IMG/VR virus record: IMGVR_UViG_3300032268_000832
Coordinates: 186,001 to 250,000 of that record
Reading direction: 5' to 3' (one strand)
Length of the DNA stretch: 64,000 bases
The notes below the pieces were generated by a model. That model was not told the origin of the DNA and searched no databases. It saw nothing but the letters and a program-made list of their open reading frames with translations. Positions 22,867 to 54,287 of this stretch are shown here, piece after piece. The translations under genes were made by a program, and so were the position numbers. The first letter of the stretch is position 1, and each line of letters starts with the position of its first letter.

Positions 22867-22968
22867 ATGAGAACAATTAACATACATATGATATCGATTT
22901 CGAATTGGAGACGCAATAGTCACCAAATGTCGGGTATGTCTAATTGCCAAGGTGGGACTGAAGTATAA
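22867..22968 (+). CDS. attenuator leader peptide 1 MRTINIHMISISNWRRNSHQMSGMSNCQGGTEV
   Basis: codons 4-19 are all read by tRNAs of the downstream cluster; contains antiterminator GTCGGGT (22929-22935). Confidence 0.85.
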   Translation: MRTINIHMISISNWRRNSHQMSGMSNCQGGTEV

Positions 22969-22993
22969 TTCAGAAACACATATAACAATACAC

Positions 22994-23027
22994 AACCCGA
23001 CTAGTTAAAAGCTTAGTCGGGTTTTTT
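22994..23027 (+). terminator. attenuator terminator 1
   Basis: AACCCGACTA..TAGTCGGGTT plus T-run. Confidence 0.85.
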
Positions 23028-23038
23028 ATTTTAAAACT

Positions 23039-23230
23039 ATGGGTGAATTAGTAAGAAAATTAGGAACTGAAAAAAGTGTCAACTTAGTTAAAGACTTTAA
23101 CCTAATAGTTGACAAGTACAGAAAAATAGCAGATGCCAGTGGATATCACGGAGAGCTAAAATTTCAAAAAGAAGGTGGGTTCACCGTAATATTTGTAGAT
23201 ATTAAAACGGACGATAATTTGGAGGAGTAA
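23039..23230 (+). CDS. hypothetical protein
   Basis: ORF track. Confidence 0.55.
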   Translation: MGELVRKLGTEKSVNLVKDFNLIVDKYRKIADASGYHGELKFQKEGGFTVIFVDIKTDDNLEE

Positions 23231-23308
23231 AGCGTAATGGTTGACCGCTCTAGTCTTGAAAACTAGTCTCGCGAAAGTGGGTTGCAGGTTCGAGTCCTGT
23301 CTCCTCCG
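23221..23308 (+). tRNA. tRNA-Ser(TGA)
   Basis: GGAGGAG/CTCCTCC, CTAGT-CTTGAAA-ACTAG, long variable arm. Confidence 0.9.
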
Positions 23309-23378
23309 CAAAAATTTACACATGCGGTGAATAGTAAAAATTATCCGCACTTTTACAAAATGTAATATATTTATTAGT

Positions 23379-23813
23379 ATGGAAATAAATATAAACGTTA
23401 AAAGGTGTTCCAAATGTCAAGAAGAAAAAAGTATTGATTTATTTGGTGTAAAAAATTATAATAAAGATGGTTTAAATCATTATTGTAAAGAATGTGAAAA
23501 TAATAGGAATAAGGTTAGATATCAAGACCCTATTCAAAAAGAAAAAATAAAGTATAATTCAATTTTAAGAAATTATGGTCTTACTAAAGAAGAATATTTA
23601 TTAAAATTAGATAAACAAGAACATAAATGTTCTATCTGTAGTGATGTTTTAAAAAATGATAAAAAAACACACGTAGACCATTGTCATTTGACTGGTGTTG
23701 TTAGAGATATTTTATGTGATAAATGTAATAAATTATTGGGTAACGTAAAAGAAGATGTTAATTACCTAAAAAATTTAATAAATTACATTGAAAAATATTC
23801 ACCGCAAAAATAA
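23379..23813 (+). mobile_element. endonuclease VII-like homing endonuclease
   Basis: CSIC..HVDHCHLTGVVRDILCDKCNKLLG; inserted in the tRNA array. Confidence 0.8.
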
Positions 23814-23866
23814 GGCGAATAGAAAAGATAATCACCGCAAAAATGCGGTGATTGTAAATTAAACAT

Positions 23867-23939
23867 GGTGGCTATAGTGTAACGGTTAACACGCTAGATT
23901 GTGGTTCTGGAAATGGGAGTTCGATTCTCCTTAGTCACC
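23867..23939 (+). tRNA. tRNA-His(GTG)
   Basis: G-1, CTAGA-TTGTGGT-TCTGG, C73. Confidence 0.9.
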
Positions 23940-23946
23940 CTTTTAT

Positions 23947-24018
23947 ACTTCGCTGGTGAAATGGCTATCATCTTGGTCTCCAAAACCAAGGTTTCAGGTT
24001 CGAGTCCTGAGCGTAGTG
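23947..24018 (+). tRNA. tRNA-Trp(CCA)
   Basis: TTGGT-CTCCAAA-ACCAA. Confidence 0.9.
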
Positions 24019-24027
24019 CTAAAACAT

Positions 24028-24100
24028 AGGCGTGTGGTGAAATTGGTTATCACGCAAGACTGATACTTTTGTATTTCGAGTTCGAGTCTCGACATGCCTA
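24028..24100 (+). tRNA. tRNA-Ile(GAT)
   Basis: CAAGA-CTGATAC-TTTTG. Confidence 0.85.
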
Positions 24101-24105
24101 CAAAC

Positions 24106-24189
24106 TGTGATGTGGATGAATGGTTTAGTCACCAGCCTGATACGCTGGGTGTTTATAACACAATGTGGGTTCGAGTCCCACCGTCACAA
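24106..24189 (+). tRNA. tRNA-Ile(GAT) with long variable arm
   Basis: CCAGC-CTGATAC-GCTGG; variable hairpin GTGTT-TAT-AACAC. Confidence 0.8.
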
Positions 24190-24191
24190 CT

Positions 24192-24425
24192 ATGAAAAGA
24201 CAATATAGTGAAAATGAAAAAGGATTGGTAGAAGCCATAGTTGGATTGTTCATTTTGCTTCCTAACCCACAATTGAAGGGTAAAGAACAAGAAATAATGA
24301 AAATTGCTTTTAAAATTCTGGACGAAATGTTAGATGAAGACTTTGAACCAGAAGAAAATGAAGATGAAGACGATGATGATGGATACGAAGATTACATCAA
24401 GTATATTGTTGAAAAACGTAAATAA
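24192..24425 (+). CDS. acidic hypothetical protein
   Basis: ATG at 24192 after the tRNA. Confidence 0.55.
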   Translation: MKRQYSENEKGLVEAIVGLFILLPNPQLKGKEQEIMKIAFKILDEMLDEDFEPEENEDEDDDDGYEDYIKYIVEKRK

Positions 24426-24499
24426 GGTCCTCTGGCGCAATTGGTTAGCGCAGCGCGCTCATAACGCGACGGTTTCGGGTTCGAGTCCCGAGGGGACCA
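24426..24499 (+). tRNA. tRNA(CAT), elongator Met or Ile2
   Basis: GCGCG-CTCATAA-CGCGA, paired 1-72. Confidence 0.85.
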
Positions 24500-24604
24500 C
24501 ACCCTATCAAATGGTGTAACCACGGGTAAAAACAGCAACGCTGGCGAATGGACCAGAGGCGCACCGTAATTGTGGTACTCGGTGTATTGATAAAAATATA
24601 AAAT

Positions 24605-24690
24605 TCTGGTTTGGCCGAGTGGACGATGGCAGCAGACTGTTAATCTGCTAGGGTACACCCTCAACGTAGGTTCGAATCCTACAGCCAGAG
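24605..24690 (+). tRNA. tRNA-Asn(GTT) with long variable arm
   Basis: GCAGA-CTGTTAA-TCTGC; variable hairpin AGGGT-AC-ACCCT. Confidence 0.8.
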
Positions 24691-24757
24691 CGAAAATTTT
24701 TTTGTTAATCTATTGACTTTTTGTTCGAATTTATTATATTTATAATAAAAACAAATT

Positions 24758-25312
24758 ATGAAAGAAAAAATATTAGAATTAAGAAAAAAAGGTTTAAAAA
24801 TTGATGAAATTGTTAAAGAATTGGGTTGTGCTAAAAGCACCGTATCATATCACATTAACAATAATGGTTTAGGTGGTAAGGTTATAACTGACAGTTTAAT
24901 TTCTAAAATTAATGAGTATTATTTAACTCATAGTAAAGCTGAAACAGCTAAACATTTCGGGATTGGAGCTTCAACTGTAACTAAATATACTGAAAATAAA
25001 AGAGTCTATTTAAGCGAAGAAGAGAGGAAAGAAAAAGCTGTTAAAGCCGTTGTAAAAAGAAGACAAAAAGTCAAAGAGATGGCAGTTGAATACAAAGGCG
25101 GTTCATGTCAGAGATGTGGTTATAATAAATACATAGGTGCTTTAGAGTTTCACCATATGGACCCAAATGAAAAAGATTTTTTAATAAGCAGAAAAGGTCA
25201 TTGTACATCTTGGGAAAAAATAAAAAAAGAATTAGATAAATGTATTTTAGTTTGTGCTAATTGTCACAGAGAAGTACACGAAGAAGAAAGAAATAACAAG
25301 GGGCTGTCGTAG
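24758..25312 (+). mobile_element. HTH-HNH homing endonuclease
   Basis: CQRCGY..LEFHH..CILVCANCHREVH; sits between two tRNA-Asn genes. Confidence 0.85.
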
Positions 25313-25373
25313 CAGCGGTCTAATACGGAGGACTGTTAATCCTTTTACATGGGTTCGAATCCCATCGGCCCCG
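25300..25373 (+). tRNA. tRNA-Asn(GTT)
   Basis: GAGGA-CTGTTAA-TCCTT. Confidence 0.85.
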
Positions 25374-25387
25374 CAAAATAAAAGAAG

Positions 25388-25540
25388 ATGGAAAAGACAA
25401 GTGAAGCTGATATGCAGCGTCTTTATGATTACTTGGATAAAATGGGTGTATCTTATACGGTAGACCGAAATCCAAGTCCAGAAAAGATTGCTAGAATCAA
25501 AGCACAAATTGAAAAGAACAAAAAAATAAGAATGTGTTAA
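25388..25540 (+). CDS. 50-aa hypothetical protein (not in track)
   Basis: manual translation MEKTSEADMQRLYDYLDKMG... Confidence 0.5.
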   Translation: MEKTSEADMQRLYDYLDKMGVSYTVDRNPSPEKIARIKAQIEKNKKIRMC

Positions 25541-25640
25541 TGCTGATAAACTACAACAGCACCAGACGAAAAACTGGCGTGGAGCATGGGACTAGTTAAC
25601 CACCACAATTGTAGGAGAATACCCTACCACATTCACAAAT

Positions 25641-25713
25641 GCCGAGGCTTATAGGAAAAGAGCCATCCCTCATAAAGATGGTCAAGTCGGTTCGACTCCG
25701 ATACTCGGTACCA
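25641..25713 (+). tRNA. tRNA-Met(CAT), atypical D arm
   Basis: loop CTCATAA, T arm GTCGG-TTCGACT-CCGAT, encoded CCA. Confidence 0.7.
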
Positions 25714-25718
25714 AAATT

Positions 25719-25791
25719 GGCTCTATCGTTCAACTGGATAGGACCTCGGTCTACGAAATCGAAAATACAGGTTCGAATCCTGTTAGAGTCA
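25719..25791 (+). tRNA. tRNA-Arg(ACG)
   Basis: TCGGT-CTACGAA-ATCGA. Confidence 0.9.
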
Positions 25792-25840
25792 CAACATCAG
25801 TCAAATCTATAATTTATATGTATCATTTGGCTAACAATAT

Positions 25841-25913
25841 GCCTCCATAGCATAAATGGAAATGCAACATCCTTCTAAGATGTCCAATCGGGGTTCGAAT
25901 CCCTGTGGGGGTA
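25841..25913 (+). tRNA. tRNA-Arg(TCT)
   Basis: ACATC-CTTCTAA-GATGT. Confidence 0.9.
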
Positions 25914-26117
25914 CAAATAAAATAGCAATCAAGGTTTGTTTCACCTTCAAGATATTCCTGAAAAGAAACTAGGTGTGTTGATAGGGGTAGCCTCCCAACA
26001 GTGACTGATTAAATTCAAGGTAGATACGGACTGGTACAGTGGTGACTTACACACGGAATTCCACTAATCCCTTTGTAGCCCGTCACGACCCAAGGGCGGG
26101 ATTGTTATTTTATTTAT

Positions 26118-26204
26118 GGAGAGTTGCCAGAGTGGTAATGGAGCGGATTGCTAATCCGTGGTCGTTAGTTCGGCCCATGGGTTCGAATCCCATACTCTCC
26201 ACCA
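26118..26204 (+). tRNA. tRNA-Ser(GCT)
   Basis: GCGGA-TTGCTAA-TCCGT, long variable arm, encoded CCA. Confidence 0.9.
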
Positions 26205-26248
26205 CGTCTTATTCATTATTTCTAGATATTTATTTAAAAATATTGATA

Positions 26249-27043
26249 ATGAAAAAATATATTAAAAATTTGCTTAGAGAAAATATTTTAAAAGAGTATA
26301 TCAATCAAGACATGGTATCTCTTAAGAGATATTTTTCTATGTCAGATGAACAAAAGAAGTCTTATTTACCACATGAATATCCATATGAATTTGATAGGTT
26401 CTTAGATGAAGAAGGTATAGAAACAGATATTGAGGGTGAAACATATGAAATATCAGATATTCTATTTGATAAAAACCCAGAATTATACAATAGATTTGCT
26501 GAATGGTTATTTAGAGAAATTGAACAAAACACACTAAACGTTCCAGACTCTGATTATCCAGCATGGGCCTATTTTGATAACCCAAGACTTGTTAAGAATC
26601 AATGGTTAATTCATTTCACTGATAATGCTGAGAGTATTGCAAGACAAGGTTTTAAATATGGTGTTGATGAAATTGATAAATTGGCGTTAACAACACATTT
26701 GGGAGAGTTCGAAAAAAAATATGGTGGTTATAATTTTGCTTATGATATTGAGAGATATGATAGATATGCACATAGCAATCGTGGTTCTGGTTTTAAATAT
26801 GGTAAAGAAGCTGTTATATTTAGAGCATCTGGTATAGAATTATGGCATTATAGTGATGAGGAACCACAAGTTATTTTTTATGGTAATACAGCTAGAAACA
26901 TAATACCAATAATAAGAGGTGAGAATGCTGATTGGGCGGTTTATAGCACAAAGAGTGGTCGTATCTTATATGAGAACGATGATTTTGACAATGTAGTTGT
27001 ATGGGTTTTAAGAAATTACGTTCAATATAGAAAACAAGTGTAA
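26249..27043 (+). CDS. IKNLLRE-motif hypothetical protein
   Basis: start reassigned to ATG 26249 (MKKYIKNLLRE). Confidence 0.7.
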   Translation: MKKYIKNLLRENILKEYINQDMVSLKRYFSMSDEQKKSYLPHEYPYEFDRFLDEEGIETDIEGETYEISDILFDKNPELYNRFAEWLFREIEQNTLNVPDSDYPAWAYFDNPRLVKNQWLIHFTDNAESIARQGFKYGVDEIDKLALTTHLGEFEKKYGGYNFAYDIERYDRYAHSNRGSGFKYGKEAVIFRASGIELWHYSDEEPQVIFYGNTARNIIPIIRGENADWAVYSTKSGRILYENDDFDNVVVWVLRNYVQYRKQV

Positions 27044-27045
27044 AT

Positions 27046-27723
27046 ATGAAAGATTTTATTAAACAAAAATTATCAGAGAATTTAGTACATGAGGTAATCG
27101 AATCTTATTTAGAAGAGGATTACCCATCCAATTTTGATTTAGAAGAATTTTCAAAATTAAATAGTTTTAACAAAAGAATCCAATACTGTCAAGAAAGACT
27201 TAAAAGAATATCATCTGGCTCATCTAGGATTGTCTATATGGTTGACGATACTAAAGTGCTTAAGATTGCGAGAAATAAAAAGGGTCTTGCACAAAACGAA
27301 ATTGAAATTGATTATTCAAATTACTATGATTTAAAAGACATCACAGCACAAGTATTTGCTTATGACCAAAATAATTTATGGGTTGAAATGGAGTTGGCTA
27401 AAAAAGTAACGCCAGCAATATTTGAAAGAGTTGTTGGTTTTACATTTGCTGATTATTGTGCTGGCCTTAGAAAACATCATGATGAAATAAACCCAAAAAG
27501 AGGTTCATGGTTTAGTTCTGATGTAAGCAAAGAAGTTTATGAAGCTATGTGGGAAGATGAATTTACTTATGAAATGTTAAGTTTTATTGGTGGTTATGAT
27601 ATTCCAGTTGGTGATTTGTGTAAACTTAACACATATGGTCTTGTAAAAAGAAATGGTGAAGACACGATTGTTATGATTGATTACGGATTAAATAATGATG
27701 TTTGGCAAGACTATTATAAATAA
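27046..27723 (+). CDS. protein-kinase-like fold protein
   Basis: SSGSSRIVY, VLKIA, QNEIE, GDL, IDYG. Confidence 0.65.
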   Translation: MKDFIKQKLSENLVHEVIESYLEEDYPSNFDLEEFSKLNSFNKRIQYCQERLKRISSGSSRIVYMVDDTKVLKIARNKKGLAQNEIEIDYSNYYDLKDITAQVFAYDQNNLWVEMELAKKVTPAIFERVVGFTFADYCAGLRKHHDEINPKRGSWFSSDVSKEVYEAMWEDEFTYEMLSFIGGYDIPVGDLCKLNTYGLVKRNGEDTIVMIDYGLNNDVWQDYYK

Positions 27724-27761
27724 TTTTTGTATAGTTAAAAAATAAGTAGTATATTTGCATC

Positions 27762-28700
27762 ATGAAAAAAGAAATAAGAACAATATTAAGAGAAGGTATG
27801 TTAAAGAATTCATTAGGGGTTGCGGTTTCAAGACCAGACCAAGTGCTTATCGTGATGCGTGGTATACCAGGCTCGGGTAAATCAACAAAAGCCAAAGAAC
27901 TAGTAGGTGAAGGAGTAATCCATTCAACTGATGCTGTTATAGAGTCACAAGGTGATTACAACAAATTCTTTCAATTAATGTTTGAATCTAAAGACTTTAC
28001 ACCATTGTCAAGAGCTCACTCTACCAATTTAAAAAACGTTGTTGGTTCGTTAAAAGAAGGTGTTTCACCAGTTATCCTAGATAACACAAACATCAAACAA
28101 AACGAATCAAAGGCCGCTATTAAGGCTGCTTTGGAAATGGGGTTGGCTGACAACAACATAAAGTTTGTGGATATAGGTACAGCTGGTCTTACAGCTGAGC
28201 AATTAGCTGAAAGAAACACTCATGGTGTACCGCTTGAAAAAATACAATCAATGATTGAATCACACAAGGGTCAAGGTCCATTAACGCTTAAAAGCGTTTT
28301 AGAATCGAAAGACATGTACAAAGAATCAAACATTTTGTATTCTGCTGTTGTATTGGATGGTGGGTCTAGAGCAGCTTTGTTGTCAAGAATTGAGGGTATG
28401 ATACCTGATGGTTGGAAAGTAATTGCGCACCACATGACTATAGTGTTTGGTAAACCAGTACCAAACCAAGAAGATTTAGGTAAAGAAGTTACTTTGTATG
28501 TTGAAGCTATAGGGATTAGCGATATGGCTATGGCTGTTAGGGTTGAAGGTTATCCATCAACCAATGCGATTCCACATATAACAATTGCGATAAACCCAGA
28601 TGGTGGAAAACCAGTGATGTCGAATGATATCACCAAATGGCAAAAAATAAAGAACTTTGCCATTAAGGGTAGAGTTACTGAAATTAAGAAAGGGTCGTAA
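27762..28700 (+). CDS. polynucleotide kinase-like P-loop fused to 2H phosphoesterase (RNA end healing)
   Basis: GIPGSGKST, ILDNTN, RNTHGVP; HMT and HIT 2H motifs. Confidence 0.85.
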   Translation: MKKEIRTILREGMLKNSLGVAVSRPDQVLIVMRGIPGSGKSTKAKELVGEGVIHSTDAVIESQGDYNKFFQLMFESKDFTPLSRAHSTNLKNVVGSLKEGVSPVILDNTNIKQNESKAAIKAALEMGLADNNIKFVDIGTAGLTAEQLAERNTHGVPLEKIQSMIESHKGQGPLTLKSVLESKDMYKESNILYSAVVLDGGSRAALLSRIEGMIPDGWKVIAHHMTIVFGKPVPNQEDLGKEVTLYVEAIGISDMAMAVRVEGYPSTNAIPHITIAINPDGGKPVMSNDITKWQKIKNFAIKGRVTEIKKGS

Positions 28701-35134: not shown

Positions 35135-36187
35135 ATGAAAAAAATGATTAAATTTCCGTCTATCGAACAATTCAGAAGCGTTGTAGCTACTGTTCTTAGA
35201 AAATATAATTTTGTTGGTCTTGATGAGAATGGTGATGCGATTTACGACACCACAAAACCAAAACCAACGCTTACCTTCAAGGGCACTGTGAAACTTCACG
35301 GAACCAATGCTGGTGTTTCTTTCAAATACGGTTATGATAACACTAGTGAGTATTGGGTACAATCTCGTGAAAACATTATCACACCAGAAAAAGACAATGC
35401 TGGTTTTGCTTTCTTTGTTGAATCACATAAAGAAGCGTTTAAAAAATTTGCTAGTCAAATTGATTCGTTGGGGATGTTTGATGTCCGTCATAACATCGTT
35501 ACGATTTATGGTGAATGGGCTGGTGGTAACATTCAGAAGGGTGTTGGTATTTCAAATCTACCAAAATCATTCTTTATCTTTGGTGTTAAAGTAACTCCGA
35601 TTACTGAAACTGAAGAAGAAGCTAGACAAAAACCAGCTTATTGGATTCCTTCACACTTTTTGAAAAGTCCTGAGGATAACATTTACAATATCGAAGATTT
35701 CCAAACTTGGGAAATCGATATTGACTTTAACATGCCACAATTGGTTCAAAACAAATTGTCAGAACTTACACTAGCTGTTGAAGAAGAATGTCCAGTTGCT
35801 AAGGCTTTTGGGTTCTCTGGAATCGGTGAAGGTATTGTTTGGTCAACAACGCTTAACGGAAACGTACACCGCTTCAAGGTGAAGGGCGAACGCCACTCTA
35901 GTTCAAAGGTTAAAACACTTGCAGCTGTAGACACTGAAAAATTGGAATCAATCCAAAGCTTTGTTGAATACGCAGTAACTGAAAGTCGTTTCAATCAAGC
36001 ACTTGAAAATGTATTCCCTAACGAAGAACCAATTGAAAACAAAAAATTGGGTGATGTAATTCGTTGGGTTGTAAACGACGTAATCAAAGAGGAAATGGAC
36101 ACCATGACTGATAACAAAATCGAACCAAAAGATGTGAACAAATACATCTCTTCTAAGGTTAGAGATATGTTCTTTAAGTTGGTGTAA
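35135..36187 (+). CDS. RNA ligase, Rnl2-like
   Basis: VKLHGTN, IYGEW, GEGIVW, FKVK. Confidence 0.8.
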   Translation: MKKMIKFPSIEQFRSVVATVLRKYNFVGLDENGDAIYDTTKPKPTLTFKGTVKLHGTNAGVSFKYGYDNTSEYWVQSRENIITPEKDNAGFAFFVESHKEAFKKFASQIDSLGMFDVRHNIVTIYGEWAGGNIQKGVGISNLPKSFFIFGVKVTPITETEEEARQKPAYWIPSHFLKSPEDNIYNIEDFQTWEIDIDFNMPQLVQNKLSELTLAVEEECPVAKAFGFSGIGEGIVWSTTLNGNVHRFKVKGERHSSSKVKTLAAVDTEKLESIQSFVEYAVTESRFNQALENVFPNEEPIENKKLGDVIRWVVNDVIKEEMDTMTDNKIEPKDVNKYISSKVRDMFFKLV

Positions 36188-46612: not shown

Positions 46613-46618
46613 TTTTTT

Positions 46619-48511
46619 TTAATATTTAGCAATTTTATCAGTTTCAATTTTACTTATAGTATTTAATTTAGCAATATATAACCCACTAGCTAAAGAAGAT
46701 AAGTTAGTAGAATAAACATATTGACCCTTAGCCATATATTTGTTTATTATAGTAAATACTTTTCTTCCCGCTACATCGAACAAACATAGTTCAGTTTCAC
46801 CGCTTTTATCTACTTTAAAATTTACAAATACATCACCATTTGTTGGGTTAGGATAAACAATCATATCACCAGTGATAAATGTTTGATTACCAATTTTATT
46901 GATTTCAACAACACCATTGGTAGGTACAATATTCATATCTGAAGAAGTTTCGTTTCCTACAAATTTTCTAGATGTGTATAATGGACTAGAGTTCCATTCG
47001 CTTTGTGGTGATTTAGCTGTAAAATATAATGTGAAAAGAGTTTCCCCGTCTTCAACAAAGTTATTATTACTAGCATCATAACCACCCCACTCAATAACAT
47101 CATCATGAGGGTTAACAAAACTTAACCATGACATTGCTTTTTGTGAGTTTCTTACTTCATTAAATTCTAATAAATTAGAATCATAATATAAAGCTAATTG
47201 TAGAGAACCTAATTTATTATTACCAGTAAGTGTTTTAACAGGTATTTCAACCATATTACCTTCACTCACAGTTAAACTAGGTAAATTAATTTCAACTGTT
47301 GGTAAAGGTCTATCATACTCAACTTTTTCATCAATAACATAACTAGAAGCATTAGCTGGGTTATTAATTTCAATAGGTGTTAAACGAGCCATATGATAAC
47401 CAGTTCTATTTGCGTCACCAGTAACCATAACATAATATGTTATACTAGTTTCACCAAAAGGTATTTCATATGTAAAGTCAGTAACACCAGCAATACTTGA
47501 AGTCATGTTTGTGTTAGGTGAACCCATAACAGTAGTGTATTCACTAGATGTAAAGAATTTAATATTGTTTACACCATTTGGCCATACGCTAAATCTACCA
47601 GAGATTTTACCAAAAACACCATAAGCATCAGATATTGTAATGTTATTGTTACCATTTACGTCAGCAGCGTAAAAATCAAAATCACTTGGTTGTCCAGTAC
47701 CTAACACCCATTGATTAATTTGCTGTGCATCCGCAACTGAAATAACGTTACCAACATCCATAGTACCACCGTTTACAACTAATCTTATATCATAAAACGT
47801 AGCGTCAATTTGCTCATTAATAGCATAAGAACCGTTTAAATCAGTAAGATAATTGTTAACTAAAGTCCATGGACCGCCAGTTTTAAGTTTTTTCTCTAAT
47901 GAGAATGGTAAATTTTTAGCTGGAGTATCGTTTACGTTCACAAAATTTGCTGTGTAAGTAAAAGTTTGTCTTAAGAAGTTACCACCATAATTGTGAAGTG
48001 ATAACACTAAGTCATTACCAGCTTGGTCAGCACCCATTTGAGGAAAAGTTTGAACACCAGTCCATGTTAAGTTTCCAATAGACGGCAAAGAATCAAAAGT
48101 TCCAGCAGCAACATGGGTAAAAGCAATATTAAACAAATTACCGATTGGTAATGTGTATGTACTATCACTACCTGTGTATACTACAGTTATAGTTACGTAA
48201 CCATTAGCATTGTTATCAACAAATTGTAAATCTAAATTGGTTGTAGAACCAATTAAAGATACAGCTGCTGATGAAAATGCTGTTTTATCATAAAACACTC
48301 TAAATTGAAGACCTGTAACTAACGAAGTAGTTGTATTAGCATAGGTTAATTTAGTGTTAGTAACACCTTGTACACTAGTACCAACGGTATAGTTCGTGTC
48401 AATTAAAACCCAAACACCGTTAGACGGTGCAACAGGTTCTTGTGCGAAAGTTGGTGTTATGAAACTAAATAATAGTAACGCAACACTAACTAATTTTTTA
48501 ATGTTTTTCAT
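46619..48511 (-). CDS. secreted cohesin/dockerin-like protein with type IX secretion C-terminal sorting domain
   Basis: signal peptide; DVNGNNNITISD; VYPNPT..FDVAGR..LASGLYIAKL. Confidence 0.8.
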   Translation of the reverse strand: MKNIKKLVSVALLLFSFITPTFAQEPVAPSNGVWVLIDTNYTVGTSVQGVTNTKLTYANTTTSLVTGLQFRVFYDKTAFSSAAVSLIGSTTNLDLQFVDNNANGYVTITVVYTGSDSTYTLPIGNLFNIAFTHVAAGTFDSLPSIGNLTWTGVQTFPQMGADQAGNDLVLSLHNYGGNFLRQTFTYTANFVNVNDTPAKNLPFSLEKKLKTGGPWTLVNNYLTDLNGSYAINEQIDATFYDIRLVVNGGTMDVGNVISVADAQQINQWVLGTGQPSDFDFYAADVNGNNNITISDAYGVFGKISGRFSVWPNGVNNIKFFTSSEYTTVMGSPNTNMTSSIAGVTDFTYEIPFGETSITYYVMVTGDANRTGYHMARLTPIEINNPANASSYVIDEKVEYDRPLPTVEINLPSLTVSEGNMVEIPVKTLTGNNKLGSLQLALYYDSNLLEFNEVRNSQKAMSWLSFVNPHDDVIEWGGYDASNNNFVEDGETLFTLYFTAKSPQSEWNSSPLYTSRKFVGNETSSDMNIVPTNGVVEINKIGNQTFITGDMIVYPNPTNGDVFVNFKVDKSGETELCLFDVAGRKVFTIINKYMAKGQYVYSTNLSSLASGLYIAKLNTISKIETDKIAKY

Positions 48512-48520
48512 TTTTCCGTT

Positions 48521-49167: not shown

Positions 49168-49168
49168 A

Positions 49169-50392
49169 ATGAGCAAACAACTAACACACGAGTTTCTAGT
49201 AGAAAATGGGTTAATACTTTTTGAAACCATAATTGGTTCTCAAGCATATGGTACCCAAACACCTACTAGTGATGTAGACAAAAAATTCGTATACATATTA
49301 CCTATGGATTATATCTTGGGTACTGGATATGTTGAACAAATAAATGTAAATAAAGACTACACAGGTTGGGAACTTAGACGTTTCCTAGAATTAATGGAAA
49401 CAAACAACCCAACGGTTCTAGAACTTTTAAACAGCCCAGGAGACTGTATAATCAGCAAACACCCTTTGTTTGACCTAATCCTTGCACATAAGGAGGATTT
49501 CATAACAAAACTATGTAAAAATAGCTTTGGTGGATACGCTAGACAACAAATTGTTAAAGCTAAAGGTCTTAACAAGAAACAAAACTGGGAAAAAGACAAA
49601 GTAACTAGAAAAGACTTGTTAGATTTCTGTTATGTTATTCAAGGTGATAAATCAATCCCATGGAGAGCGTGGAATGCTAACAAATATGATGAAAAATTTG
49701 TTGGTGCTGTGAATATCCCAAATGCGAGAGATACCTACGCTTTATTTTATGACAGCGTTGCTGAAATGCTTCATTCTGAAAATACTGATGAAGAACTTAG
49801 AGAGACTTATAAAGAAGCACTGAGAAAAGCTGGTAAATCAATGGGTATGGGTTATAAAGGACTTATCAATACTGGTCATGAAGATGAAGATGGTAAGATT
49901 AACTACGGTATCTCAAATCAATTACGTCTTTCTAGCGTACCTAAAGGTGAGAAAGTTATTGCAACAATAGTGTATAACAAAGATGGTTATTCAGAACATT
50001 GTAAAGACTATAAAGAGTATCAAGAATGGCTTGAAAACCGTAACGAAGCTCGTTATGTTGAAACACAAGAACATGGGCAAAGAATTGATGGTAAGAATAT
50101 GATGCACTGTATGCGTCTTATCAGAATGGCAACAGAAATTGGTCAAGGTAAAGGGATTCAAGTAAGAAGAGAAGATAGAGAATATCTATTATCAATTCGT
50201 AGAGGTGAACTAGACTTAGATAAATTAATCGAAGAAGCGGATAATGCAATTAAAAATATGGATGAAGTTTTTGATAATTCCACTCTACCTGACAGAGTCC
50301 CTAAGGGTTTGGTAAATGCTCTTTTAGTTACTATCAGAAGAGAATTTTATGATTTGCCAATATCGGCAACAACACTTGAAAAAAGACTTTAA
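49169..50392 (+). CDS. Pol beta-like nucleotidyltransferase (YcgL/RlaP-like)
   Basis: GSQAYGTQTPTSDVD, NPTVLE, KNMMHCMRL. Confidence 0.8.
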   Translation: MSKQLTHEFLVENGLILFETIIGSQAYGTQTPTSDVDKKFVYILPMDYILGTGYVEQINVNKDYTGWELRRFLELMETNNPTVLELLNSPGDCIISKHPLFDLILAHKEDFITKLCKNSFGGYARQQIVKAKGLNKKQNWEKDKVTRKDLLDFCYVIQGDKSIPWRAWNANKYDEKFVGAVNIPNARDTYALFYDSVAEMLHSENTDEELRETYKEALRKAGKSMGMGYKGLINTGHEDEDGKINYGISNQLRLSSVPKGEKVIATIVYNKDGYSEHCKDYKEYQEWLENRNEARYVETQEHGQRIDGKNMMHCMRLIRMATEIGQGKGIQVRREDREYLLSIRRGELDLDKLIEEADNAIKNMDEVFDNSTLPDRVPKGLVNALLVTIRREFYDLPISATTLEKRL

Positions 50393-50393
50393 G

Positions 50394-50897
50394 ATGGATA
50401 TATTTGACGCACCTAAAAATTGTATAAGAACCAACAGTGGTTTATATATAAATGTTTTTGAACCAAAATCTGAAATGATTAATATTGAAGACATCGCACA
50501 TGCGTTAGCTTCTTTGCCCAGATTTGGCGGTCATTTAAACAAACACTATTCAGTGGCGCAACATTGTATAAGATGTTGCGAAATGGCTGAAGGGTTTGAA
50601 GACAAAAAAGCAGCTTTGCTCCATGATGCTAGCGAAGCGTATATGTTAGATATACCAACACCAATAAAATCAATGTTACCAGATTATAAAAAATATGAGG
50701 GTAATTTAATGATGTTTATTGCAAATCATTTTGATTTTGAATACCCATTAAACGAAAAAGTTCACACTATAGATAGAGATATGTTAGTATATGAATGGGA
50801 AAATTTAGTGGTAAATGAATCTGAGGAATTTGAATGTTGGGACCATGCAACAGCTAAGTCTAGATTTATAGATGAATTTAATAATTTATTTAAATAA
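50394..50897 (+). CDS. HD-domain deoxynucleotidase-like protein (YfbR/YfdR-like)
   Basis: DIAHAL, RFGGH, YSVAQH, LLHDASEAY, DIPTPIK. Confidence 0.85.
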   Translation: MDIFDAPKNCIRTNSGLYINVFEPKSEMINIEDIAHALASLPRFGGHLNKHYSVAQHCIRCCEMAEGFEDKKAALLHDASEAYMLDIPTPIKSMLPDYKKYEGNLMMFIANHFDFEYPLNEKVHTIDRDMLVYEWENLVVNESEEFECWDHATAKSRFIDEFNNLFK

Positions 50898-51215
50898 ACT
50901 GTTATTTTCTAATAAAAATTGTATATTATCATCGGCTGTTTGACAGTCATCTATGAAGGAGAATATTTGCTCATTGGTAAGTATTCTCCATTCATTTTTA
51001 GCTTCAGTCTTAGTTTGGTGTTTTCTATGAAGCCATTGTTCTACTTTTAAGTAATTTTTACTTTCATATTGCTTTAATAATACAATCTTATTAGGGTTAC
51101 CAGTTTGTAATTCCGATAATCTAATTTTTATATCTCTTTTTGTGACACCTATCTTGTAGGATTCATTTCCATCAATGTCTGTTTGTAGTAATAAATATAC
51201 ATGTCCCATAATCAC
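50886..51215 (-). CDS. GIY-YIG nuclease (T5orf172/MUG113-like)
   Basis: VYLL..YKIGVT..RLSELQTGNP..E..LH..EW. Confidence 0.8.
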   Translation of the reverse strand: MIMGHVYLLLQTDIDGNESYKIGVTKRDIKIRLSELQTGNPNKIVLLKQYESKNYLKVEQWLHRKHQTKTEAKNEWRILTNEQIFSFIDDCQTADDNIQFLLENNSLFK

Positions 51216-51265
51216 AAATATATTAGAGTTTTTGTATTTTGTAAATATTTATAAATAAAAAAAAT

Positions 51266-51853
51266 ATGAAAGACTTTATAAAAAATAGACTTAGAGAATC
51301 TTTAGAACATGAAGAAGATTTACAAGAAATAAATTGGAAAGGATTAGCCGCTGGTGCTGCTATGACGTTGGGTACGTTAGGTGCGCAAGGACAAACGACA
51401 GAACCAACTACACAAACACAAACACCAACAACTCAAACAACACAACAAAAACCAATGTTCGGTACACCAGAACAAAGAGCTGCTGCTAAGGCTAAAAGAG
51501 AAGCTCAACGTAAAAAGAATTTTGATATTTCTGTAAATAATGCTTATGGAATGGGATTTGTTGAAGATATTGAAGAAGAAGAATTTAACACTGGTTGTAA
51601 CATAGCCAATAATCAAGAATTAAAATATTTAGATGGTTCATCACCTGAATTCCCTAATTTTGTATATAGAGAAATGGAAGATGGTACCAAAGTTAAGATT
51701 AATATGAAAAAATATCTTAATTATATTAGAAAACAAAATAAACAAGCTGATGTGCCTTTAGATGGTTTACAAGGTCCTAATTTTAAATCAACAAAATGTG
51801 GTGTTTCTAAAGATGCTGCAAAACAAAGCAAAAGCGATTGGAGTAAAAAATAA
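51266..51853 (+). CDS. IKNRLRE-motif protein
   Basis: MKDFIKNRLRE; hydrophobic segment then Thr/Gln-rich linker. Confidence 0.65.
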   Translation: MKDFIKNRLRESLEHEEDLQEINWKGLAAGAAMTLGTLGAQGQTTEPTTQTQTPTTQTTQQKPMFGTPEQRAAAKAKREAQRKKNFDISVNNAYGMGFVEDIEEEEFNTGCNIANNQELKYLDGSSPEFPNFVYREMEDGTKVKINMKKYLNYIRKQNKQADVPLDGLQGPNFKSTKCGVSKDAAKQSKSDWSKK

Positions 51854-51894
51854 CCATTTTAATGGTTTTTTTAAAAAATCATATATTTATTATA

Positions 51895-51945
51895 AAAAAG
51901 TTGCAAAAAAACTTGACTTGTATTAAAACAGTTCGTATATTTGCA
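51895..51945 (+). promoter_or_regulatory. promoter of the Cys/Val/Leu tRNA operon
   Basis: AAAGTTGCAAAAAACTTGACTTGTATTAAAACAGTTCGTATATTTGCA, near-identical to 53493-53543. Confidence 0.75.
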
Positions 51946-51982
51946 TCGTATTAAATTTTAACGAAAAAAGAAACAAAACAAA

Positions 51983-52063
51983 ATGAGAAATACTTTTAAC
52001 ATATTAGTCCTTTTAAGCTTATGCTTGCTAGTGGTAAACACAGCAGGGCTTTGCGTATGTTAA
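51983..52063 (+). CDS. attenuator leader peptide 2 MRNTFNILVLLSLCLLVVNTAGLCVC
   Basis: 10 of codons 8-18 are Leu/Val/Cys; antiterminator GGGCTTT (52046-52052). Confidence 0.85.
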   Translation: MRNTFNILVLLSLCLLVVNTAGLCVC

Positions 52064-52093
52064 ACTCATCTGAATAAGATAAGTATCTCTCAC

Positions 52094-52125
52094 AAAAAGC
52101 CCATCCTAACCAGATGGGTTTTTTT
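52094..52125 (+). terminator. attenuator terminator 2
   Basis: AAAAAGCCCATC-CTAACCA-GATGGGTTTTTTT. Confidence 0.85.
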
Positions 52126-52138
52126 ATTGAATAATAAT

Positions 52139-52219
52139 GCCGTGGTTCCTGAGTGGTCAAAGGGGGCGGACTGCAAATCCGCTGCGAAAGCTTCGTGGGT
52201 TCGAATCCCTCTCACGGCT
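52139..52219 (+). tRNA. tRNA-Cys(GCA) with extended variable arm
   Basis: GCGGA-CTGCAAA-TCCGC; variable TGCGAAAGCTTC; U73. Confidence 0.85.
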
Positions 52220-52240
52220 CAATGATAAACTGAAAAAAAA

Positions 52241-52621
52241 ATGGAAGGTAAAGATTACTTAGTTGGTTCATTTAGAACCAAAAACGGTGCTCAAGTTAAC
52301 GTTTATAGAAATATTAAAAATATGGAAAAGAATGAAATTAAAAAGGACTTGTATAAGTCAAAGAATCTGGCTAAATTTAGCCACTATGTAAACGGAAACC
52401 TGTATTATAAGGTAGACGTGATGGACGGAACTTATCAGTTCCCAATAAAAACAGTACAGAAATCATATGTAATGGATACTAGACAAGTTGAAAAGATTCC
52501 AACACTAGTATTAGCAGAAGATTTAGGAACAACAAGTTTTGACGCTGAAATAAAGGGTTCTGAATTGATTAGATGGATTGAAAAAGCTATCGATAATGAA
52601 GATTTTATAAAAGTAGGGTAA
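52241..52621 (+). CDS. hypothetical protein
   Basis: ORF track. Confidence 0.65.
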   Translation: MEGKDYLVGSFRTKNGAQVNVYRNIKNMEKNEIKKDLYKSKNLAKFSHYVNGNLYYKVDVMDGTYQFPIKTVQKSYVMDTRQVEKIPTLVLAEDLGTTSFDAEIKGSELIRWIEKAIDNEDFIKVG

Positions 52622-52634
52622 AACCTACTTAAAT

Positions 52635-52723
52635 GGGACTATGGTGTAGTTGGTTAAACATCCCATCCTTACAAGATGGAGACGAGAAGTATAACGCTGG
52701 TTCGAATCCAGCTAGTCCTACCA
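52635..52723 (+). tRNA. tRNA-Val(TAC) with 16-nt variable region
   Basis: CCATC-CTTACAA-GATGG; encoded CCA. Confidence 0.8.
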
Positions 52724-52731
52724 AAATAAAT

Positions 52732-52818
52732 GGCCTTGTGGCGAAACTGGCAGTACGCACTAGACTTAAAATCTAGGGTCCCGAAGGGGGCGTGTGGGTT
52801 CGACTCCCACCAAGGCTA
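52732..52818 (+). tRNA. tRNA-Leu(TAA)
   Basis: CTAGA-CTTAAAA-TCTAG, long variable arm. Confidence 0.9.
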
Positions 52819-52826
52819 CACAATAT

Positions 52827-52909
52827 GCGGATATGGTGGAATGGTAGACACACTAGCCTTAGAAGCTAGGGCTCATTTGGGCATGCGAGTTCGAGTCTCG
52901 CTATCCGTA
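52827..52909 (+). tRNA. tRNA-Leu(TAG)
   Basis: CTAGC-CTTAGAA-GCTAG, long variable arm. Confidence 0.9.
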
Positions 52910-52915
52910 CAAATC

Positions 52916-52990
52916 GCATCTGTAACTCAGTGGTTCAGTAGTGCTTCCTTTACACGGAAGAAGTCGGGGGTTCGAATCCCTCCAGATGCA
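52916..52990 (+). tRNA. tRNA-Val(TAC)
   Basis: CTTCC-TTTACAC-GGAAG. Confidence 0.9.
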
Positions 52991-52992
52991 CT

Positions 52993-53083
52993 AAAAGATA
53001 GTTTCAGCAAACAAAAACTGGTTAAAAATTCACACTTAAAATGCGAACGAAGCGGTTCAAATCCGCAAAATATAACTATCTTG
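52993..53083 (+). ncRNA. Y-RNA-like element copy 5 with tRNA-derived cargo
   Basis: AAGATAGTT / AACTATCTT-G, TCAGCAA; internal CTTAAAA loop and T arm GCGG-TTCAAAT-CCGC. Confidence 0.65.
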
Positions 53084-53088
53084 TTTTT

Positions 53089-53172
53089 GGCCGAGTGGCG
53101 TAATTGGTAGCCGCGCCAGTCTAAGAAGCTGGTTCTCGAAAGGGAGTGTGGGTTCGAGTCCCACCTTGGTCA
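53089..53172 (+). tRNA. tRNA-Leu(AAG)
   Basis: CCAGT-CTAAGAA-GCTGG, long variable arm. Confidence 0.85.
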
Positions 53173-53201
53173 CAAATTGAAATATCAACATATTTATTAG
53201 T

Positions 53202-53483
53202 ATGAAAACACTAATAAAACAATTGTTAAGAGAAAACATACTTGAATTACCAGATTACGCTGTTATTGAAATTACAATACCAATAGCATACATGGACCCT
53301 AAGTATTATTATCAAGCTGTACCAATAAATCAGTTGGATTCTGATAGGATATACATTTGGAAAGGTGCTGCTGGTGGTAAATCAATATCAACCAAGAGTG
53401 TTAGAGTATTAAAAACATTCAAATACAACGAAAAAGATGAAATGGACGTTTATCTTAATCAATTGAGAAACAACGAAATATAA
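53202..53483 (+). CDS. IKQLLRE-motif protein
   Basis: MKTLIKQLLRE; ATATTTATT upstream. Confidence 0.65.
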   Translation: MKTLIKQLLRENILELPDYAVIEITIPIAYMDPKYYYQAVPINQLDSDRIYIWKGAAGGKSISTKSVRVLKTFKYNEKDEMDVYLNQLRNNEI

Positions 53484-53492
53484 AATATTTCA

Positions 53493-53543
53493 AAAAAAGT
53501 TGCAAAAAAACTTGACTTGTATTAAAACAGTTCGTATCTTTGC
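53493..53543 (+). promoter_or_regulatory. promoter of the Phe/Glu/Asp/Ala tRNA operon
   Basis: TTGACTTGTATTAAAACAGTTCGTATCTTTGCA. Confidence 0.75.
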
Positions 53544-53623
53544 ACTATAATTAAAAACAAAGAAAAAAAATGACTTTTTAAAAAAAGTCGCATATTTATA
53601 AACAAATACAAAAAGAAAACACA

Positions 53624-53713
53624 ATGAGAACTTTAACTAACATATTTGATTTCGCATTTTTTGCAGCCGAGGAGGATTACTCTTTCGGAAGGTCAAACAC
53701 TGTCATAAGTTAA
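53624..53713 (+). CDS. attenuator leader peptide 3 MRTLTNIFDFAFFAAEEDYSFGRSNTVIS
   Basis: codons 8-18 are all Phe/Asp/Ala/Glu; antiterminator AGGTCAAAC (53690-53698). Confidence 0.88.
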   Translation: MRTLTNIFDFAFFAAEEDYSFGRSNTVIS

Positions 53714-53738
53714 CGTTTAAATTAACGATATAAATGAT

Positions 53739-53768
53739 AAGTCTGACCTAATAAGTCAGACTTTTTTT
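53739..53768 (+). terminator. attenuator terminator 3
   Basis: AAGTCTGAC-CTAATAA-GTCAGACTTTTTTT. Confidence 0.85.
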
Positions 53769-53783
53769 ATGCAATAAATAATT

Positions 53784-53856
53784 GGTTCTGTAGCTCAGTT
53801 GGTAGAGCACTAGATTGAAGCTCTAGGTGTCGTGGGTTCGAGTCCCACTGGAACCA
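53784..53856 (+). tRNA. tRNA-Phe(GAA)
   Basis: CTAGA-TTGAAGC-TCTAG. Confidence 0.9.
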
Positions 53857-53865
53857 CAAAAAAAT

Positions 53866-53940
53866 GGCCCCGTCTTCTAAACGGAATAGGAAGCCACCCT
53901 TTCAAGGTGTGTAATGCGAGTTCGAGTCTCGTCAGGGCTA
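53866..53940 (+). tRNA. tRNA-Glu(TTC)
   Basis: CACC-CTTTCAA-GGTG. Confidence 0.85.
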
Positions 53941-53977
53941 CAATCTGGTTAAGATTCCAGTAATCAAAAATCTAAAT

Positions 53978-54050
53978 GGTCTATTCGTCTAGTCGGTCAG
54001 GACGTGCCCCTTTCACGGGTAAAACACGGGTTCGAATCCCGTATAGACTA
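53978..54050 (+). tRNA. tRNA-Glu(TTC)
   Basis: TGCCC-CTTTCAC-GGGTA. Confidence 0.9.
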
Positions 54051-54059
54051 CAATAAAAA

Positions 54060-54131
54060 GGTCCTATCGTTCATCGGCTAGGATGCCTCCCTGTCACGGA
54101 GGTGAGGAGGGTTCGATTCCCTCTAGGACCG
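54060..54131 (+). tRNA. tRNA-Asp(GTC)
   Basis: CCTCC-CTGTCAC-GGAGG. Confidence 0.9.
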
Positions 54132-54215
54132 CTGGTAACATCTGGTAATTTTAATACCAGTAAAAACCATTAAAAACAGGGATTATTAGTTTTATCTGGT
54201 AATGTCTGGTAATTT

Positions 54216-54287
54216 GGGGTCATAGCTCAACGGCTGAGCGCTTCCCTTGCACGGAAGAGGATGTGGGTTCGAATCCCATTGGCTCCA
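54216..54287 (+). tRNA. tRNA-Ala(TGC)
   Basis: CTTCC-CTTGCAC-GGAAG; G3-U70. Confidence 0.9.

Follow-up and report, generated by a model that had tools for sequence, protein, structure and literature searches.

Predicted leader-peptide attenuators in front of the tRNA operons of a 306-kb phage of Bacteroidota

Introduction

In the enterobacterial amino-acid operons (trp, his, leu, thr, ilvGMEDA, ilvBN and pheA), transcription is controlled by a short translated leader that carries a run of regulatory codons on or next to region 1 and by three mutually exclusive helices: 1:2, the antiterminator 2:3, and 3:4, an intrinsic terminator with a U tract. Leaders naming several amino acids are known, as in ilv (Ile, Leu, Val) and thr (Thr, Ile). 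The pheST operon of E. coli, with its pheM leader, appears to place a component of the translation apparatus under the same type of control, in response to the supply of its cognate aminoacyl-tRNA. T-box riboswitches also sense tRNA status and act through a terminator/antiterminator choice upstream of translation-related genes, but they bind the tRNA directly, without a ribosome, through a specifier codon and the T-box sequence. In Bacteroidota, the Bacteroid-trp motif (Rfam RF01692) appears to be a Trp-codon leader motif. Large phages such as T4, T5 and other jumbo phages carry clusters of tRNA genes interspersed with homing endonucleases and small ORFs, which may offset host tRNA loss, codon-usage mismatch or tRNA-targeting defence.

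Here we examined a window of 64,000 nucleotides (positions 186,001 to 250,000 of IMG/VR record IMGVR_UViG_3300032268_000832), together with the rest of the phage genome and its relatives. A first-pass annotation had proposed that three tRNA operons in this window are gated by attenuators whose leader codons match the tRNAs encoded downstream. Each element that it listed was found, the pattern proved stronger than it had reported, and the parts of its interpretation that sequence analysis can test held up.

Results

Four tRNA units share one layout

Three units in the window consist of a near-identical promoter, a short ORF with a good start context, a strong intrinsic terminator and a tRNA array. 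Their features are as follows, in window coordinates.

22781-22812 (+), promoter of unit 1: conserved box CTTGACTTGTATTAAAA plus the -7 element TATATTTG
22867-22968 (+), leader ORF 1, 33 codons; codons 4-19 (22876-22923) use only I, N, H, M, S, W and R codons
22874-22894 (+), region 1 of leader 1, including ACATAC at 22880-22885 (the conserved AAC ATA motif), which is predicted to pair with GTATGT at 22934-22939
22927-22946 (+), region 2 of leader 1; the core GTCGGGT (22929-22935, codons 21-23) is complementary to the terminator's 5' arm
22994-23029 (+), intrinsic terminator of unit 1 (regions 3 and 4 plus the T run; hairpin 22994-23023)
23221-26204 (+), tRNA array 1: Ser(tga), His, Trp, Ile, Ile, CAT (Met or Ile2), Asn, Asn, Arg(acg), Arg(tct), Ser(gct), with interspersed small ORFs, including HNH endonucleases
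51912-51943 (+), promoter of unit 2
51983-52063 (+), leader ORF 2, 26 codons; codons 8-18 (52004-52036) are L, V and C codons plus one Ser; the region 2 core GGGCTTT lies at 52046-52052
52096-52128 (+), intrinsic terminator of unit 2 (hairpin 52096-52122), 17 nt before the first tRNA
52139-53173 (+), tRNA array 2: Cys, Val, Leu(taa), Leu(tag), Val, Leu(aag)
53511-53542 (+), promoter of unit 3
53624-53713 (+), leader ORF 3, 29 codons; codons 8-18 (53645-53677) are F, D, A and E codons; region 2 lies at 53690-53707
53739-53770 (+), intrinsic terminator of unit 3 (hairpin 53739-53763), 21 nt before the first tRNA
53784-54288 (+), tRNA array 3: Phe, a tca-anticodon (opal-suppressor-type) tRNA, Glu, Asp, Ala

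The 17-nt promoter box occurs exactly three times on the + strand of the window, at 22781, 51912 and 53511, and each copy is followed by a Bacteroidota-type -7 element, TAnnTTTG, which in unit 1 lies at 22805; the unit 1 promoter is conserved in relatives. All three ORFs begin ATG AGA and contain AAC ATA, and leader ORF 1 is conserved in more than 50 contigs. The three terminators have dG values of -10.7 to -15.1 kcal/mol, the strongest (-15.1) being that of unit 1, and runs of 6-8 T. The tRNA arrays were identified with ARAGORN and the Rfam tRNA model. A fourth unit, which the first-pass annotation could not see, lies just past the window end at genome positions 250950-252929. It has the same promoter, a leader run of K, T, Q, Y, P and G codons, a terminator, and Pro, Lys, Gly, Gln, Tyr and Thr tRNAs, and serves as an out-of-sample test of the pattern. 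A Bacteroidota host is indicated by the promoter element and by a T9SS sorting domain.

To determine if the leaders carry credible translation signals, we scored their start codons with a start-context matrix built from the phage's own long ORFs. The A-rich contexts of the leaders score in the top 0.3-2.2% of all ATGs, with leader 1 in the 99.7th percentile, and above the median of the long-ORF starts. In units 2, 3 and 4 the hairpins (-10.7 to -16 kcal/mol, with T runs) end only 17-21 nt before the first tRNA, which leaves no room for a promoter, and no other promoter-like site stands inside the arrays of this genome. The tRNAs can therefore be transcribed only by reading through the terminator.

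Leader codons name the amino acids of their own array

The codon runs of leaders 1 to 3 end at codons 19, 18 and 18. In codons 8-18, the numbers of codons naming amino acids of the unit's own array are 11, 10, 11 and 11 of 11 for units 1 to 4, while the other arrays score 0 apart from one single match. The binomial P values for the three units in the window are 1.6e-6, 5e-8 and 9e-8, and the product over the units is 3e-26; only 1-3 of 1274 short ORFs in the whole genome score as high. The four sets partition all 20 amino acids as 7 + 3 + 4 + 6. What is more, all 25 non-suppressor anticodons have a cognate run codon under strict wobble rules (P = 0.009 against synonymous resampling), and the runs favour codons that are rare in the phage, with a mean usage of 0.41 against 0.53 expected (P < 1e-4) and a GC3 of 0.40 against 0.20.

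We then asked whether the match holds in homologous loci. Across eight genomes, own arrays match 266/297 run codons, whereas other arrays of the same genome match 18/792. There are exceptions, which we label G008, G009 and G010: G008 keeps K, Q, T and G codons before an array holding only Tyr and Pro (2/11), G009 scores 8/11, and G010 has Ser(gga), which does not read the leader's TCG codons. Replacements in the runs of leader 1 stay within the set, 11 to 1, and there are 58 synonymous changes at conserved residues across all leader classes. A second lineage splits its tRNAs into two arrays, and its two leaders follow that split, scoring 18/18 and 12/12 for their own array against 0/18 and 3/12 for the other. 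In this lineage, however, promoter-like sites lie inside the arrays and between the terminator of the second leader (leader B) and its first tRNA, so that control there cannot be exclusive.

Alternative helices in the leaders

Codons 21-25 of the leaders (23-26 in leader 3) are complementary to the 5' arm of the terminator. With the first 48 nt excluded, 11 leader variants pair the 5' arm with the coding region (codons about 20-26 in ten, 26-30 in one), with z scores of -2.3 to -4.0 against shuffles. When a ribosome footprint was placed on run codons 8-14, the 2:3 antiterminator formed in all four leaders, although a footprint at the last run codons (16-19) would cover part of region 2. Before region 3 is transcribed, the lowest-energy fold of all four leaders is the 1:2 helix, and RNAalifold gives this helix for 13 relatives of leader 1; its columns are nearly invariant, however, so there is no covariation support for it. 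At equilibrium the full-length RNA keeps the terminator under every footprint tried, and the switch must therefore be kinetic. In simple truncated folds, leaders 1, 3 and 4 form the antiterminator even without a ribosome, and only leader 2 gives the textbook on/off picture; the gain over the 1:2 state is small, 0 to -6.9 kcal/mol.

The antiterminator pairing, on the other hand, co-varies with the terminator across relatives. In 32 leaders, own region 2 against own 5' arm averages -11.4 kcal/mol, compared with -7.85 +/- 0.39 when the pairs are permuted, and in 38 further variants from metagenomes the values are -10.2 and -7.8 +/- 0.36. In neither data set did any of 20,000 permutations reach the observed mean. 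RNAalifold recovers the helix with compensatory changes, including double changes in 7 of 11 pairs in leader 3, and compensatory changes in relatives were also found in the terminator of unit 1.

Discussion

The sequence data are best explained by ribosome-mediated transcription attenuators of the trp/his/ilv type that regulate tRNA genes, a reading to which we assign a probability of about 0.8. A conserved phage promoter would start a transcript whose first feature is a leader ORF of 26-33 codons, in which codons about 4-19 are drawn almost only from the amino acids of the tRNAs encoded downstream. If those aminoacyl-tRNAs are plentiful, the ribosome would run through, region 2 would be either covered by the ribosome or re-captured by region 1, and the terminator would form and stop transcription before the first tRNA. 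If any one of those tRNAs is scarce, the ribosome would stall in the run and sit on region 1, leaving region 2 free to pair with the terminator's 5' arm, and RNA polymerase would read into the array. In the absence of transcript, 3'-end or ribosome data (no RNA run was listed and no cultured relative was found), translation of the leaders, read-through caused by stalling and the natural cause of the shortage are inferred. In this model tRNA is both the sensed molecule and the product, so each unit is a closed negative-feedback loop, the four units together watch all 20 amino acids, and the phage probably makes tRNAs only when they run short.

The first-pass annotation had named starvation and anticodon-nuclease defence as possible triggers, and the trigger remains an inference. 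It is possible, though we hold this only tentatively, that the selected role of the same attenuator is inducible counter-defence, in which host anticodon nucleases or other tRNA-depleting immunity cut particular tRNAs and the stalled leader switches on just the matching replacement set. The design is an OR gate over every tRNA species of an array, and between the tRNA clusters the phage carries an RNA-ligase-domain ORF, a CCA-adding-type nucleotidyltransferase and a tmRNA, the kind of toolkit that goes with tRNA damage; phage tRNAs may counter tRNA-targeting defences. However, nothing in the sequence identifies a nuclease target, the four groups do not obviously follow known nuclease specificities, no RtcB was found, and plain homeostasis (host tRNA decay after host shut-off, or a mismatch in codon usage) explains the same features. 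If host immunity or host shut-off does act in this way, the four attenuators could form a phage-borne monitor of the whole aminoacyl-tRNA pool, with 20 amino acids read through four channels, which would be both the first case of tRNA genes controlled by ribosome-mediated attenuation and a new layer in the phage-host conflict over tRNAs.

A classical amino-acid-starvation sensor, reading charging level rather than tRNA amount to time or tune infection according to host nutrition, seems unlikely. Uncharged tRNA stalls ribosomes in the same way, as in the trp, his and ilv attenuators, and the sequence features cannot distinguish charging level from abundance. But more tRNA does not relieve a lack of amino acid, so the output would be futile, and shortage of the tRNA itself is the more sensible selected signal. 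Moreover, the leaders match tRNA species (anticodons) and not just amino acids, and they follow the gene content of their own array even when the grouping differs.

It is very improbable that there is no regulation, with the hairpins acting as leaky terminators or processing signals and the short ORFs arising by chance or encoding small functional peptides. Leader 2 is hydrophobic and could pass for a small membrane peptide, and there is no expression evidence. Yet the codon-set match, with P around 1e-6 to 1e-8 per unit, recurs in a fourth unit and in two lineages, the peptide tails vary freely while their RNA keeps complementarity to the terminator, and an unconditional terminator 17-21 nt before the only genes of an operon would make no sense. 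Least likely is T-box-like sensing without a ribosome, for although the leader holds a row of triplets complementary to the downstream anticodons, no T-box or other Rfam family matches, the triplets lie in one frame set by an ATG with a strong start context, replacements in the run keep to the amino-acid set and include two-base Ser codon switches (TCG to AGC or AGT), and the geometry fits a ribosome footprint.

Comparison with known systems

The arrays described here resemble those of T4, T5 and other jumbo phages in being clusters of tRNA genes interspersed with endonucleases (HNH matches in this genome) and small ORFs. We found no report of translated, codon-matched attenuators in front of such arrays in full-text searches of the literature, and nothing similar in Rfam 15, which agrees with the statement in the first-pass annotation that it knew of no described phage system of this kind. 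The Bacteroid-trp motif occurs in the phylum of the likely host, and its model matches Bacteroides thetaiotaomicron among our controls, but it has no match in the phage genome; the family is tied to tryptophan genes and has a different sequence and a different output. T-box riboswitches share the sensing of tRNA status and the terminator/antiterminator choice, but no Rfam match to them was found at gathering or permissive thresholds, and the features point to translation. The pheST attenuator regulates an aminoacyl-tRNA synthetase, for one amino acid, in a cellular genome, whereas here the regulated genes are the tRNAs themselves.

The units resemble the enterobacterial amino-acid operon attenuators in layout, with a short leader ORF, a run of regulatory codons on or next to region 1 and predicted 1:2 (without covariation support), 2:3 and 3:4 helices, although there is no sequence or Rfam similarity. 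They differ in that the genes downstream are tRNAs, small ORFs and HNH endonucleases rather than enzymes for the amino acids named by the leader codons, in that one leader carries up to seven amino acids and up to nine anticodons, in that four units together cover all 20 amino acids, and in that the system is encoded by a phage of Bacteroidota.

Genomic Context and the Likely Host

The window, bases 186001-250000, belongs to a 306,463-bp virus record with 30.9% G+C and 38 tRNA genes by ARAGORN. The host is almost certainly a member of Bacteroidota. An ORF at 46619-48511 (-) carries a cohesin domain and a type IX secretion C-terminal sorting domain, which points to a Bacteroidota host and suggests that the phage uses the host secretion system, and the promoters carry the TAnnTTTG -7 element. 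DNA runs that hold the sequence are lake-water metagenomes. DNA searches of phage GenBank entries returned only tRNA and HNH matches, and the single weak hit of the protein search, LR745206.1, has no leader and no tRNAs nearby. A scan of a genome collection with an 18-mer gave mostly chance hits; two true leaders sat on contigs binned to a Methanobacterium MAG and to a gammaproteobacterium, so they give no host information. We also considered a link to the bS21 jumbo phages of freshwater Bacteroidetes. However, the genome has no S21 gene, and the paper on those phages reports nothing on tRNA control.

RNA and translation maintenance genes lie among the tRNA clusters, at 17660-18847 (+), 35135-36187 (+), 2418-3872 (+) and 5658-6689 (+): a CCA-adding/PolyA_pol-family enzyme, an RNA-ligase-domain protein, a DUF2828/DUF7788 protein and a full DnaJ. 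Together with the tmRNA, the RNA-ligase-domain protein and the CCA-adding-type enzyme fit a phage that maintains its own translation supply, but they prove nothing about defence. Further tRNA-related loci were observed outside the units with leaders:

8292-8645 (+), a tmRNA (Rfam RF00023, 72.4 bits), just upstream of the next cluster
9587-13916, a separate tRNA cluster without a leader, with two CAT tRNAs that have a mismatched 1:72 pair (initiator-like), a cta-anticodon tRNA and a Cys tRNA
57580-58510 (+), a promoter of the same general type as those of the units, without any leader ORF, preceding a second tRNA-Phe (57769-57842, the best-scoring tRNA in the window), then about 600 nt of GC-richer sequence that looks structured, then a tRNA-like gene with an eight-base anticodon loop (58432-58508)

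Leader Codons Match the Downstream tRNAs

The window holds three copies of an exact 17-nt promoter box. About 55-100 nt after each box comes a short ORF, which is followed by a strong hairpin with a T run and then by a tRNA array. The three ORFs are:

22867-22968, leader 1
51983-52063, leader 2
53624-53713, leader 3

All three begin ATG AGA and contain AAC ATA. Their start contexts are A-rich and, with a matrix trained on the phage's own long ORFs, fall in the top 0.3-2.2% of all ATGs. A 17-nt motif, ATATTTATAAACAAATA, lies 8-11 nt before the start codon of leaders 1, 3 and 4, at 22843-22859 and 53599-53615 in the window and at 251052-251068 in the genome, and might be a translation enhancer or a processing site. 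To compare the leaders with the arrays, we translated the leaders.

Codon runs of the three leaders in the window and the tRNAs encoded downstream (leader; run; amino acids used; downstream tRNAs)
Leader 1; codons 4-19; I, N, H, M, S, W, R; Ser, His, Trp, Ile, CAT (Met or Ile2), Asn, Arg
Leader 2; codons 8-18; L, V, C, plus one Ser; Cys, Val, Leu
Leader 3; codons 8-18; F, D, A, E; Phe, Glu, Asp, Ala, plus a suppressor-type tRNA

In the shared stretch of codons 8-18, own-array matches are 11, 10 and 11 of 11, while the other arrays score 0, with one single match. Binomial P values are 1.6e-6 to 5e-8, and only one to three of 1274 short ORFs in the whole genome reach these scores. What is more, a fourth tRNA cluster (Pro, Lys, Lys, Pro, Gly, Gln, Tyr, Thr, Gly) lies just beyond the window, with the same promoter, a leader run of K, T, Q, Y, P and G codons (11/11), and a terminator 18 nt before the first tRNA. 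This unit could not be seen when the first-pass annotation was made, so it serves as an independent test. The four sets partition the 20 amino acids as 7 + 3 + 4 + 6. The match also holds at the level of tRNA species, since all 25 non-suppressor anticodons have a cognate codon in their own run under strict wobble rules (P = 0.009 against synonymous resampling). The runs are enriched in codons that the phage otherwise rarely uses, which is what a sensitive sensor would need. On the other hand, no collinearity is apparent between codon order in the leader and tRNA order in the array.

Two suppressor-type tRNAs are present, with anticodons cta (amber) and tca (opal), at 13106-13179 and 53866-53941. 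Stop-codon recoding as the reason for these tRNAs was not supported: stop-free coverage is 0.89 under the standard code, against 0.91 when either stop is read through. Leader 4 ends in TAG followed directly by TAA. Five tRNAs of 82-89 nt (24106-24190, 24605-24691, 52139-52220, 52635-52723 and 10385-10473) have long variable arms but anticodons for amino acids whose tRNAs normally have short arms, namely Ile(gat), Asn(gtt), Cys(gca), Val(tac) and a CAT tRNA. All five pass the Rfam tRNA threshold, although their identity and function are unclear.

ORFs inside tRNA array 1, at 23379-23813 (+) and 24758-25312 (+), include at least one that resembles HNH homing endonucleases of many large phages, and tRNA gene order and copy number differ between close relatives. 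Several ORFs of very different lengths, at 26249-27043, 27046-27723, 51266-51853, 53202-53483 and 54341-56683 (+), share a similar N-terminus (M-K-x-[FLY]-I-K-x-x-L-[RS]-E-[NS]-[LI]), and some of them sit inside or next to the tRNA arrays. Pfam has no match for the 780-aa member.

Predicted Alternative RNA Structures

In the first approach we folded the full-length leaders at equilibrium with ribosome footprints. The terminator was always retained, as expected for a kinetic switch, and this calculation cannot show the switch. We therefore replaced it with folds of transcripts cut before the terminator's 3' arm. In transcripts that end before region 3, the terminator's 5' arm, is made, the lowest-energy fold of all four leaders is a long helix between regions 1 and 2 (the 1:2 helix), formed by codons about 3-10 and codons about 20-27. 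The conserved AAC ATA motif is part of region 1; in leader 1, ACATAC pairs with GTATGT just 3' of the antiterminator core, and RNAalifold finds this helix in 13 relatives.

When the terminator's 5' arm was present but the 3' arm was not, and a footprint covered run codons 8-14, the 5' arm paired with codons 21-25 in all four leaders, the partner in leader 3 being codons 23-26. Folds that left out the first 48 nt gave the same partner in 11 variants, with a range of codons about 20-26 in ten of them and 26-30 in one, and z -2.3 to -4.0 against shuffles. Without a footprint, however, only leader 2 shows a clean off state in this simple model, and the gain from switching out of the 1:2 helix is modest, 0 to -6.9 kcal/mol. 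We take the order of transcription, in which 1:2 forms first, and the local terminator hairpin (-10.7 to -16 kcal/mol) to set termination as the default.

In units 2-4 only 17-21 nt separate the terminator from the first tRNA, and no other promoter-like site stands inside the arrays of this genome. The tRNAs can therefore be made only by reading through the terminator.

Conservation in Relatives

The promoter box found six IMG/VR contigs. The 63-aa ORF that follows terminator 1 found 18 loci, down to 47% identity, and in 16 of the 18 an L1-type leader (the class of leader 1) lies upstream. We then examined the tRNA regions of seven larger relatives, of which four (G001, G002, G006 and G007) carry all four leader classes, while the other three carry one to three classes. 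Across the eight genomes, codons 8-18 match the genome's own array in 266 of 297 cases and the other arrays of the same genome in 18 of 792. A 35-nt degenerate pattern from leader 1 found 56 metagenome contigs, which gave 39 distinct leader peptides (one is not a leader).

The peptide tails vary freely. The terminators differ too, and the segment at codons about 21-25 changes with them, examples being GTCGGGT/ACCCGAC, CAAGG/CCTTG, GAATTCGG/CCGAATTC and GAGACGG/CCGTCTC. The pairing of own region 2 with own 5' arm is more stable than every one of 20,000 permuted pairings, in both data sets. RNAalifold recovers the antiterminator with compensatory changes for the L1, L3 and L4 leader classes, while L2 rests on per-sequence duplex analysis. 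Replacements inside the L1 run stay within the amino-acid set, 11 to 1, and include Ser switches between TCG and AGC or AGT.

The match is not absolute. The relative G008 has only 17 tRNAs and keeps an L4-type leader before an array of just Tyr and Pro (2/11); its L2 leader has lost Val from the run, and its array has no Val tRNA. The array of G009 lacks Ile and Met tRNAs, and its leader has fewer Ile codons (8/11). G010 carries Ser(gga), which does not read the leader's TCG codons. These cases look like evolutionary lag rather than contradiction.

A Second Lineage with a Different Split

A search with the 5'-UTR motif ATATTTATAAACAAATA was too unspecific and most hits were unrelated; the loci were reused as a control set. 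By luck, they included four contigs (L026, L053, L078 and L105) that belong to a different lineage, in which the motif recurs before the first of two leaders, leader A. The tRNA regions of three of the contigs (G011-G013) each have two leaders. Leader A has a run of S, I, N, H, V, Q, P, F, K, C and W codons and precedes an array of Gln, Phe, His, Arg, Ser, Pro, Met, Ile, Asn, Lys, Val, Cys and Trp. Leader B has a run of L, Y, M, D, T, R or G, A and E codons and precedes Asp, Glu, Met, Tyr, Gly, Ala, Thr, Arg and Leu.

In G011 and G012, own-array scores are 18/18 and 12/12, against 0/18 and 3/12 for the other array. In G013, leader A scores 16/18 own against 2/18, and leader B 12/12 against 1/12. 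The overlap in leader B is Met and Arg, which occur in both arrays. These runs do not fit the four-way partition of the window's genome; leader content therefore follows the genes downstream and not ancestry. Both leaders have a segment complementary to their terminator's 5' arm. This lineage also has a repeated promoter-like element (TTTG, 19 nt, TAATTTTG; loci L254 (G011:C1:41001-60000), L255 and L256) directly upstream of several individual tRNAs inside the arrays. One such element lies between leader B's terminator and its first tRNA, so tRNA expression there has at least two layers of control and the attenuators cannot be the only one.

Discussion

How tRNA gene expression is matched to demand is an old open question, and in bacteria it is mostly ascribed to growth-rate and stringent control of promoters. 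Here tRNA operons appear to be governed by the speed at which a ribosome reads codons for those same tRNAs, a direct, species-specific feedback loop built from parts of a textbook mechanism. It would explain how large phages carry dozens of tRNA genes without paying for them constantly, and it gives a concrete, testable link between phage tRNAs and host tRNA depletion or cleavage. The units are compact, about 250 nt, and modular, and six leader classes, each with its own amino-acid set, already exist in nature, which makes them candidate sensors of the supply of individual tRNAs in Bacteroidota.

Amino-acid starvation would also stall the ribosome, but extra tRNA would not relieve it. The selected signal is more likely a shortage of the tRNA itself, which could come from host shut-off, codon demand or tRNA-cleaving defence.

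We found no description of leader-peptide attenuators upstream of tRNA genes, in phages or in cells, in the literature searched, although this omits most subscription journals and an older report cannot be excluded. The anatomy agrees at the sequence level with that of a leader-peptide attenuator, except that the 1:2 helix is predicted and conserved but has no covariation support. The units are not a T-box or any other Rfam family, and their output is not amino-acid biosynthesis. We conclude, from sequence analysis and without transcript or experimental evidence, that they work like the trp/his/ilv attenuators but regulate tRNA genes, which makes each unit a feedback loop on tRNA supply.
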